From Mytilus californianus (taxonomy: Eukaryota), in assembly GCF_021869535.1 (NCBI RefSeq), contig NW_026262581.1, positions 136,772,001 to 136,836,000 on the forward strand: a DNA stretch of 64,000 bases. The letters are read 5' to 3'. Positions 11,101 to 14,100 of the stretch are shown one piece after another. The notes below the pieces were generated by a model that made no database searches, was not told the origin of the DNA, and saw nothing but the letters and a program-made list of their open reading frames with translations. The translations under genes and the position numbers were made by a program. Position 1 is the first letter of the stretch. Each line of letters starts with the position of its first letter.

Positions 11101-14100
11101 TTCAGTTTTAGAACCTTACCATTGTAAAAGATAATTTCATTTACATTAGGTTTATATCTCTTTGAAGTAGGCAATATAGACCTTATATTAGTATGCAGTA
11201 ACATGAATACTATGAATAGTCATAATACATGCCATGGATTAGTATATAGATAGTAAATAATTGTGGTTAGATATGGAAAAAATATGTTATGAAAAAGCCG
11301 TATAATCGGTAAACTCTTTGTATGAATTAAGTATTCTTTAATAGAAAACAGGTGAAGAGGGTGTAAAGTCCTGACATAGATAGGCACAAAGAAAGATTAC
11401 TTTTATTTTAGTAAATGATCTAAATGTTGGAATTTAAATGTGATGATTCAATTTTATGTGACAATTGCTACTTTTTGCAAAAAAGTCTTGAGTTTCAACC
11501 TCATTCTGATCATTTCTTTAAAGAATTTTTCAGTATTCTGTTGAAGAATGGGCACTACTTTACTTGGTTTAGGTGAAGACATGTAGCAAGTCAATTTATG
11601 TCATATCATGGAAAACCAACAGGGATCATGTTCTTTCAAAGGGGGAAGTTTAAGCTTAATTTGGTGAAGGTTGTACATATGATTCAAAAGAATAGGACAG
11701 AACATGAGCATTTTGCAAGTGTATACTGGAAACTTAAAAAAATGTTTTGGTGTGTCCTAATGTAAATAATGTTCTAAGAAATTAACATAACATTTGTAGT
11801 ACAACAACATACACAAATAATATTTCTTAACCAAAAATTCCACTGTGACTATAAGAGATAGCTGTGACAGGGGAGACAATTCAGTGCTGTTTACAGGATC
11901 TAACTTACCTCCATCACCACTGTTTCCACCTCGAGCCTTAGCTATGGAGTCTAATTCATCAAAGAACAAAACACAAGGAGCCGCAGATCTAGCCTGAATT
12001 CCAATCAAATTATAAGATTATACCCTCTGTTTGTCAGTTTTAAATTGATCCAACATTAATATACAGTAAGAGGATAATGACTGTACCAACACTAGAACAG
12101 GTGACTTTCAATTATTTTCAAATTTGACAAAACTGCAATACCTTTAATAAATGAATGAGTATGCAAATGGAAATTTCATGAAGATAACCCCAAACTTTCT
12201 AAAAACTGGTCTAAATTTGTGTTTAGAGAACCTTTTCTATTGATTAAATCATAAAAGATTGTCAACAACTGACAATGCATTAATTATAACAGTCATTATC
12301 ATCCTCTGGCAAGCAACGTTACATTCATGATGCAGTGAAGCAAGGACATACAGCAGGGCTAATACAGCCAAGCTACATACCTCCATCTCCTGCATTGCCT
12401 CCTCTAGACTTAGCTATGGAGTCTAACTCATCGAAGAACAGGACACATGGTGCTGCCTGTCTTGCCTGACATGTGGTAATTAAACAATTCATTTATTAAA
12501 TATTAAATAAAAAAATACAATATATCATTGTATGTTTTGTGCTTAGTTTAAGAAAACATTCAGTCTAACATACATTTACATATTGGAGCTGAAAATTGAC
12601 ACATATCTTAACTGCATGTCATAATATGAGATTGACATTCTATTTATTCCGTGCTTATGTCATTATTTTTTCTTTCTTAAACGTGAGATGTAAAACATAC
12701 AGGCCCGGTACAAATCATTTCTATCTTACACGTTTGTAGAATAAGTAGTAAATTTATATAGAAACATATTGTAAGCATCACAAGGTTTCATCAATCAAAG
12801 GCTGTATATCTCTGTGTTTCCCAAATGTTAATACTGCCAATACCATTGTACTGCTGGTGGTGTATAGTAAACAATGCAGATACATATTGTGGCATTTATG
12901 TTGTACTTGTCTGTAATAGTAATAGTTTTGTAACAAGTTTAATTAGTTATTGTATCATTAATGACCTCTTACCTTATCAAATATTTCTCTGACATTAGCT
13001 TCAGATTCTCCAAACCACATGGTTAACAATTCTGGTCCTTTGATAGAAATAAAATTAGCCTGACATTCATTAGCTATAGCTTTGGCTAGTAGAGTTTTAC
13101 CACATCCTGGTGGTCCATAAAACAATACTCCTTTTGATGGTGTCATACCAAACTTCAAAAACTTCTCTGGATGTTCAACTGGATACTATAAATATAAAAA
13201 TTCATATTATAAACATTACAATGCTATTAGTTTTGAACAAAAAAGAGAAAATTTTAAATCCTATGAAAATATGTAGTTGTATTTACAAGCAAACATTATT
13301 TAATTTTCAATTTATCTTTATTTTTGTCCACTTTACTGACTTTCCATGTATCTATGATCATCCCATATTTCTAGCGAGAACATTTTAAGAATATATTCAT
13401 CATAAATCGTTCTTTTTGTTGAAATTCATACTACATTTCATAAAATCTGACAGGACTTGGTTTTCCTGTATAGTTGTGTGTTTAAAAACAGTTACTAACT
13501 TGTGTTTACATACAAGACTTGCATGATCCTATACATACATACATGTTTTATTTTGGCCTTACCTGTACAAGTTCCTGTAATTCTTTTTTTACATTTTCTA
13601 GACCACCAACATCATCCCAGCTAACATTAGGTACTTCAACTGATGTTTCTCTAAGAGCACTTGGATTACTCTTGCTAAGGGCCCACTGTATAAACAGAAA
13701 TATTATATAACTTTGTGACCTATATATTACCAACATCTTATTTCATTAATATTCTATTATTAAAATGTGAACATTGTACAAAGTATAAAGAAATTAAAAT
13801 CCAATCAGGAATGATATAGAGTTGACTGACAGACAAATGAAATAGAATTTTCCACCATTTGCAGTTACAGTTTCATTTACATTTATTGAGTTTTGTCCTC
13901 AATAAAAGCATGAAACAAACCAATTTGATAGTAAAAGTCTACAATTGAAATGATACATACATGTAAATATTCTTACCCTGAAATCATCCATTGTTACAGC
14001 CAATGCATCCAATACTTCAGCATCAATCGAAATGATACATAAATATTCTTACCCTGAAATCATCCATTGTTACAGCCAATGCATCCAATACTTCAGCATC

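Follow-up and report, generated by a model that had tools for sequence, protein, structure and literature searches.

Can the motor of an ATPase as conserved as p97 be made in two versions by choosing between two copies of one exon? This question is raised by a stretch of 64,000 nucleotides (nt) from the mussel Mytilus californianus (the window, whose positions are used below unless another locus is named), which carries on its minus strand the gene for VCP/p97, the transitional endoplasmic reticulum ATPase, with two adjacent copies of coding exon 13, called here 13A and 13B. p97/VCP, an abundant and essential unfoldase of extreme conservation, is usually regarded as a homohexamer of one isoform, with its regulation ascribed to cofactors and post-translational modification. 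A preliminary description of this DNA had proposed that the two copies are spliced in alternatively and yield two forms of the protein. Our analysis makes it very probable that they are a mutually exclusive exon pair, derived from an old tandem duplication of VCP exon 13 and giving two p97 isoforms of 801 residues.

Two copies of exon 13, used one at a time

Exon 13A (12381..12465, minus strand) and exon 13B (11909..11993, minus strand) are each 85 nt long, encode 28 residues, share their phase and are separated by an intron of 387 nt (12380..11994). Their splice sites, with a slash at each exon boundary, read tcag/GCA...GAG/gtatgt for 13A and tcag/GCT...GAG/gtaagt for 13B, so that the lengths, phase, AG/GT sites, coordinates and translations first described were reproduced exactly. 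The copies agree at 65 of 85 nt and 25 of 28 residues, differing at 20 nt, and a recount by the method of Nei and Gojobori (NG86) returned the same 13 synonymous and three amino-acid-changing codon differences as before, with a nonsynonymous divergence (dN) of 0.098, a synonymous divergence (dS) of 1.98 and a dN/dS of ~0.05. The introns flanking 13A and 13B do not align to each other.

The pair lies between two constitutive exons. Exon 12 (12973..13185, minus strand; 213 nt, ending in phase 0) is placed by its translation and by the RNA sequencing (RNA-seq) junctions 13185 to 13563 and 12972 from 12464 or 11992, and its product holds the D2 Walker A motif and pore loop 1 (MWFGES). Exon 14 (10959..11052, minus strand; 94 nt), placed by translation and by the junctions 11050 to 12379, 11050 to 11907 and 10522 to 10959, finishes a split Gly codon, and its product includes ...GATN.

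Four public RNA-seq runs were compared with window positions 10350-13800: X23, a set of raw, stranded reads from the same organism; X5, from another study; and X1 and X10, from a second organism. Junctions were listed from at least 3 reads and 2%, and the contigs that represent X1, X5 and X10 lose minor variants. In X23, 35 reads join exon 12 to 13A and 49 join 13A to exon 14, while 13B is joined to exon 12 by 7 reads and to exon 14 by 4, against 97 reads for the constitutive 15-14 junction and 77 for 12-11. Neither a 13A-13B nor a 12-14 junction was listed at this threshold where the neighbouring junctions have 35-97 reads, a modest depth at which rare forms are possible. Run X5 contributes two 136-nt contigs, 12-13A-14 at a depth of 14.3 and 12-13B-14 at 9.47 (60:40), and the contigs of X1 and X10 hold the A form only. 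The share of 13B among transcripts is thus ~12% in X23 and ~40% in X5. The placement of 13A rests on its translation, the junction reads and contigs from X1, X5 and X10, and that of 13B on its translation, the junction reads of X23 and the contig from X5.

Splicing of 13A and 13B is mutually exclusive, with A as the major form in the runs examined. The junction counts (12-13A, 12-13B, 13A-14, 13B-14 and 13A-13B) bear out what had been proposed: each copy is joined to exons 12 and 14 in two independent studies, both are spliced in, and no co-inclusion or double skipping is listed. The proposal of two isoforms holds as well, since transcripts of both kinds are seen and residues 565, 582 and 587 distinguish the RefSeq isoforms X1 and X2.

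One further joint, 11966 to 13597 in X1 and X10, proved spurious. It stems from a 27-nt match (window 11940-11966) to an unrelated 4.3-kb contig, in which these 27 nt correspond to the FFDELDSIA core of exon 13B and continue as ...DSIAPRRGHDNTGV (PRRGHDNTGV); the contig is presumably, from its sequence, a transcript of a paralogous AAA ATPase gene.

As first stated, including both copies or neither shifts the reading frame, and we computed early stops for both products: with both exons present, the frame ends at the second 13B codon to be read, and with both skipped, 7 codons into exon 14. Since 85 nt leaves a remainder on division by three and the double-inclusion and double-skip products stop early, exclusivity of the stable mRNA is guaranteed; we infer that nonsense-mediated decay (NMD) removes the aberrant products. 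Those same early stops, together with conserved intron elements around the 13A donor described below, would also suit a pair that mainly sets the amount of VCP through regulated out-of-frame products coupled to NMD, with protein diversity as a by-product. We consider this very unlikely, given that no 13A-13B or 12-14 junction rises above threshold beside neighbours with 35-97 reads, and that it leaves the amino-acid-level conservation of both copies unexplained.

Maintenance of both copies within Mytilus

A profile search for animal VCPs, followed by cluster listing, recovered RefSeq isoforms X1 and X2, each of 801 residues, in M. californianus, M. edulis, M. galloprovincialis and M. trossulus. 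In all four species the two isoforms differ exactly at residues 565, 582 and 587, which equals the 13A/13B swap, and both forms are also present among earlier ENA gene models for M. edulis and M. galloprovincialis. The genomic loci of M. edulis and M. coruscus hold both exons in the same place, with peptides identical to those of M. californianus and intact splice sites.

Between M. californianus and M. edulis, exon 13A differs at 5 of 85 nt and exon 13B at 2 of 85, all of them synonymous, which makes 13B more conserved than 13A or the constitutive exons. The introns around them diverge by 15.8% (intron 12), 11.9% (13A-13B) and 21.7% (13B-14) in the same comparison. When M. coruscus is added, exons 13A and 13B still change at synonymous sites only. 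Exon changes that are all synonymous, set against introns that are 12-22% diverged, argue that both copies are under purifying selection, as had been claimed from the codon differences between them. Judged by these alignments, the pair is kept by selection in at least three sequenced Mytilus genomes, and it is annotated in five species.

The same data dispose of the idea that an artefact of assembly or haplotype produced the second copy, or that the duplication is young and has yet to decay. The VCP gene of M. californianus does carry a 99%-identical 76-nt triplication in exon 10 that is specific to this assembly, and it is this that would make such an origin thinkable for exon 13; yet 13A and 13B differ at 20 of 85 nt with flanks that do not align, the assemblies of M. 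edulis and M. coruscus, which are independent of this one, have both at the matching position, and both are spliced into mRNA in independent runs. We regard an artefact as already refuted.

Age and distribution of the duplication

No second exon 13 copy or remnant was found at the VCP loci of two Crassostrea assemblies, the scallop Argopecten and the brachiopod Lingula. Crassostrea has a single exon 13 fused to exon 12 without an intron, Argopecten has one separate exon 13, and Lingula also has one. In the oysters (Crassostrea angulata / C. gigas; 6029-6325 in the first of the two loci) the exon 12 and exon 13 sequences are contiguous, the intron of mussels, scallop and Lingula being absent.

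The nucleotide distance between A and B is 20 of 84 positions, that of either copy to the oyster exon is 20, and that to the scallop exon is 15-16. Because the A-B distance equals the distance between bivalve orders, against a dS of 0.1-0.3 within Mytilus, the duplication is, by this sequence measure, much older than the genus, and the divergence is saturated at the level of bivalve orders. A peptide beginning ARS... is shared by oysters, scallop, Capitella and Gigantopelta and is probably the ancestral lophotrochozoan form. It lies one change from 13B and two from 13A, so that, on that reading, the major mussel exon 13A would be the more derived of the two.

The preliminary description had also entertained one ancient duplication resolved differently in different lineages, with human retaining Q and fly S at residue 568. 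This finds no support in the comparison: position 568 varies freely in single-copy orthologues, and the oyster, scallop and Lingula loci are without a second copy or remnant.

Isoforms X1 and X2 of Limulus were considered as a comparable exon pair and rejected, as a block of four exons, ~11.6 kb by the spacing of its two copies, is doubled there at 96-100% identity in an old, gap-containing assembly. In Limulus polyphemus (KI895874.1, with 1380 N) the block encoding VCP residues 314-493 stands at 15178-20622 and again at 26763-30382, and the two RefSeq isoforms differ by which four-exon block is used. Judged by its sequence, it would be a segmental duplication of recent date or one introduced by the assembly, rather than a diverged exon pair.

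Candidate elements of splice choice

Two classical routes to exclusive splicing find no footing at this locus. The donors of the cluster (GTAAGA, GTATGT, GTAAGT and GTAAAT) are all of the U2-type GT-AG class, and a U12-type donor (RTATCCTT) is found in none of the four, which leaves no U2/U12 incompatibility; steric hindrance, which needs a donor less than ~60 nt from the branch point, does not apply to an intron of 387 nt. Weak pyrimidine tracts at both acceptors, also part of the preliminary description, hold in part: the longest pyrimidine runs are 3-4 at 13A and 13B against 5-7 at the comparison acceptors, and the pyrimidine fraction at -23..-4 is 0.60 for 13A and 0.55 for 13B, the values for exons 12, 14 and 15 being 0.55, 0.75 and 0.65.

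The 13A donor, GAG/GUAUGU, is weaker than the 13B donor, GAG/GUAAGU, and is covered by a predicted hairpin, H1 (12330..12395, minus strand), proposed from fold energy and conservation, in which GAG/GUAUGU pairs with GCUGUAUGUCCUU. The 3' half of H1 coincides with an intron block (12337-12380) of 44 nt directly after the donor that is invariant in three Mytilus species, a run found in 0 of 2000 column shuffles. Of the 60 intron nt nearest the donor, 56 are invariant at 13A, compared with 36 at exon 12 and 35 at 13B. H1 folds at -27.3 kcal/mol in M. californianus (z -3.36; 0 of 200 shuffles as stable) and at -23.9 kcal/mol in M. edulis (z -2.33), and it appears in the three-species consensus fold. 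The corresponding stretches at the donors of exons 12 and 14 have z ~0, and that at the 13B donor forms no significant hairpin (z -1.0, -0.2 and -0.6).

Directly after H1 begins the 5' arm of a predicted long-range stem in the 13A-13B intron, H2. This arm, AGAGGAUG-AUA-AUGACUGU (12289..12307, minus strand), was recognised from inverted repeat I7, the single-sequence minimum-free-energy fold and the consensus fold. The 3' arm, ACAGUCAUUAUCCUCU (12069..12084, minus strand), is supported by the inverted repeat, conservation and the consensus fold. It sits ~75 nt upstream of the acceptor of 13B, within a stretch of 27 nt (12059-12085) that is unchanged in the three species; by column shuffle, an invariant run of this length has P ~0.008. 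Two M. edulis indels, a deletion of 3 nt and an insertion of 63 nt, lie respectively in the unpaired AUA bulge of H2 and in the loop between its arms. More speculatively, formation of H2 would cut the path from the donor to 13B to less than ~100 nt.

A search for docking and selector elements thus yielded one long-range stem, H2, and one donor hairpin, H1, with no second competing partner and no covariation in three species. A perfect 14-bp inverted repeat flanking 13A (I8; 12487-12500 / 12143-12156) was set aside as due to chance, being conserved in neither M. edulis nor M. coruscus.

Splice-site-masking hairpins are known to set exon choice, as does the donor stem-loop of MAPT exon 10. H1 is like that stem-loop in being a stable local stem over the donor of an alternative exon, with a strongly conserved intronic arm; it is unlike it in that its role is predicted, covariation is absent and the masked exon 13A is still the major form. 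H1 and H2 are, on the strength of these models, candidate regulators of the A:B ratio.

Protein differences between the isoforms

Exon 13 aligns to residues 566-593 of human p97 (PDB match, E 3e-16) and encodes the Walker B residues D577/E578 and most of D2 pore loop 2, the part of the protein to which it had first been assigned. The RefSeq isoform pairs and this alignment likewise uphold the equivalence of mussel residues 565, 582 and 587 with human Q568, A585 and I590. Position 568 lies in the segment ahead of the D2 Walker B strand, 585 adjoins the pore-loop-2 arginine R586, and 590 is the first residue of the pore-loop-2 tip, 590-IGDGG-594. R586 and R599 are required for endoplasmic-reticulum-associated degradation, and the IGDGG tip forms part of the channel lining that surrounds the substrate (PMC10216129).

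Across ~120 eukaryotic CDC48/VCP sequences, position 568 is Q, S, A, G, M or T, position 585 is A, S, H or Q, and position 590 is V, I, A, S, L or G, the rest of the exon 13 segment being nearly invariant. Each mussel isoform falls inside the natural range of single-copy orthologues, which makes subtle tuning the likely nature of any functional difference between A and B.

Several observations weigh against a functional, mutually exclusive pair. The missing 13A-13B reads amount to fewer than 3 reads at a depth of ~50 in one raw-read run, and the A:B ratios are drawn from runs without tissue identity. The two proteins may be near-equivalent, since single-copy orthologues vary freely at precisely the three positions that distinguish them, and in mutagenesis the pore-loop-2 residues of D2 are, according to a review, non-essential for unfoldase activity (PMC10216129). 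As for the RNA elements, the paired positions of H1 and H2 are invariant in three species and therefore show no covariation, so that the conserved blocks could be protein-binding sites, and the 661-nt region as a whole is no stabler than its shuffles (z +0.22).

Some of these points would fit 13B being a tolerated, low-level alternative exon, whose mis-splicing the frame lock makes harmless and whose protein is interchangeable with that of 13A. The A/B differences sit at naturally variable positions only, the review finds the loop residues dispensable for unfolding, and 13B makes up a minority in X23 and is missing from the contigs of X1 and X10. Set against this, 13B has changed at just 2 of 85 nt, both synonymously, beside 12-22% intron divergence; its splice sites are intact in three genomes; it reaches ~40% in X5; and synonymous sites have had time to saturate while both copies stayed intact. 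We therefore think it unlikely, if still a serious contender, that 13B is merely tolerated.

A maintained, mutually exclusive pair accommodates these facts best. After an old tandem duplication of exon 13, each mature mRNA carries either 13A or 13B; the frame lock allows only single-copy mRNAs to yield the full product, and NMD would clear the others. The choice is probably tuned at the 13A donor, a weaker site held in a conserved and unusually stable hairpin, followed by the long-range stem. The resulting two D2 rings may show a modest kinetic or regulatory difference.

The VCP gene and its surroundings

The window is AT-rich, and over 24,000 nt it matches the M. californianus assembly GCA_021869535.1 (JAKFGE010000001.1) with 0 mismatches; being the same genome, that locus was left out of the comparisons. 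Within the window, the VCP/p97 gene was located at 5087..29019 on the minus strand by a stop-to-stop open-reading-frame map and tblastn of the RefSeq isoform; the located stretch runs from coding exon 2 to the stop codon (5087), and no exon 1 was located. The translated exons present the N-D1-D2 layout, Walker A and B motifs in both rings and the aromatic pore loop of D2, and Pfam finds CDC48_N, CDC48_2, two AAA and two AAA_lid_3 domains on the RefSeq product. The Mytilus protein shares 92% identity with the VCP of oyster and 87% with that of vertebrates.

At the end of exon 10 of this minus-strand gene (window 13964-14179), a 76-nt unit is repeated 2.8 times at 99% identity. Each unit contains the last 17-18 codons of exon 10, the donor site and the start of the intron, with three identical donors as the result, and 76 nt is not a multiple of three. 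Because M. coruscus has a single copy and M. edulis lacks the exact motif, this repeat is, from the sequences compared, a recent tandem duplication specific to M. californianus or to this assembly.

Discussion

Mutually exclusive exons born of tandem duplication are well documented, among them human ATE1 exons 7a/7b and the 5N/5A exons of SCN genes, and such substitution events have been catalogued (PMC9741552, PMC8373072, PMC5740500). The mussel VCP pair is like these in its adjacent homologous exons of identical length and phase, of which exactly one enters each mRNA, in the purifying selection on both, in the frame break that follows from including both or neither, and in its conserved intronic elements that could base-pair. 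It differs in that the gene is new to this class, the pair is lineage-restricted, being present in Mytilus and missing from the oyster, scallop and Lingula loci compared, only a few residues are substituted, all at naturally variable sites, and no competing docking/selector pairs were found. No report of a duplicated exon pair in VCP/p97/CDC48/TER94 was found in the literature, including a term search of one catalogue paper of such events. Both isoforms are public in automated RefSeq annotation, though we found no paper that describes them; what is new is the gene.

A second case emerged in the brachiopod Lingula anatina (LFEI02000277.1), whose VCP gene has two tandem 94-nt copies of exon 14, at 13569-13662 and 13962-14055, 299 nt apart. 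Both keep intact AG/GT sites, and the sequence flanking one copy does not align to that flanking the other. Differences occur at 18 of 90 nt and 6 of 30 residues (dN 0.12, dS 0.84, dN/dS ~0.15). RefSeq isoform X3 uses the second copy, and both copies are apparently used in RefSeq isoforms. The Lingula exons 14a/14b resemble the mussel pair in belonging to the same gene and to a neighbouring D2 exon, in being tandem copies and in having a length that is not a multiple of three. They differ in encoding the helix after pore loop 2, the MDG motif of inter-subunit signalling and sensor 1, and in occurring in another phylum. As both exon and phylum are different, the Lingula duplication is an independent event, and from their sequence exons 14a/14b probably form a mutually exclusive pair of their own within D2.

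The Lingula locus has other features of its own. A gene of the Vps55/LEPROT family (1-1211) adjoins VCP, and two further exons appear twice, each ~2.5 kb apart, which may be genuine or due to the assembly: the N-terminal exon (residues 1-40) at 5169-5288 and 7679-7798, and the exon for residues 126-189 at 6969-7160 and 9482-9673.

A bolder extension of these findings, which we find doubtful and offer as conjecture, is that A and B subunits of p97 co-assemble into variable hexamers, in which the D2 pore-loop-2 collar and the surroundings of Walker B would be tuned by a regulated splice switch at the 13A donor hairpin. Taken with Lingula, this would amount to a repeated lophotrochozoan tuning of the D2 motor that is unknown from model organisms.

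The effect to be expected is modest, as the substitutions are conservative ones at sites that vary naturally. Bivalve annotation and proteomics should nonetheless separate the two VCP forms, which tryptic peptides tell apart. A maintained exon pair in the catalytic core of D2 is a natural experiment on these loop positions, with mixed hexamers as a possible outcome, and the exon 14 case in Lingula suggests that the D2 region of VCP may be a recurrent target of isoform diversification.

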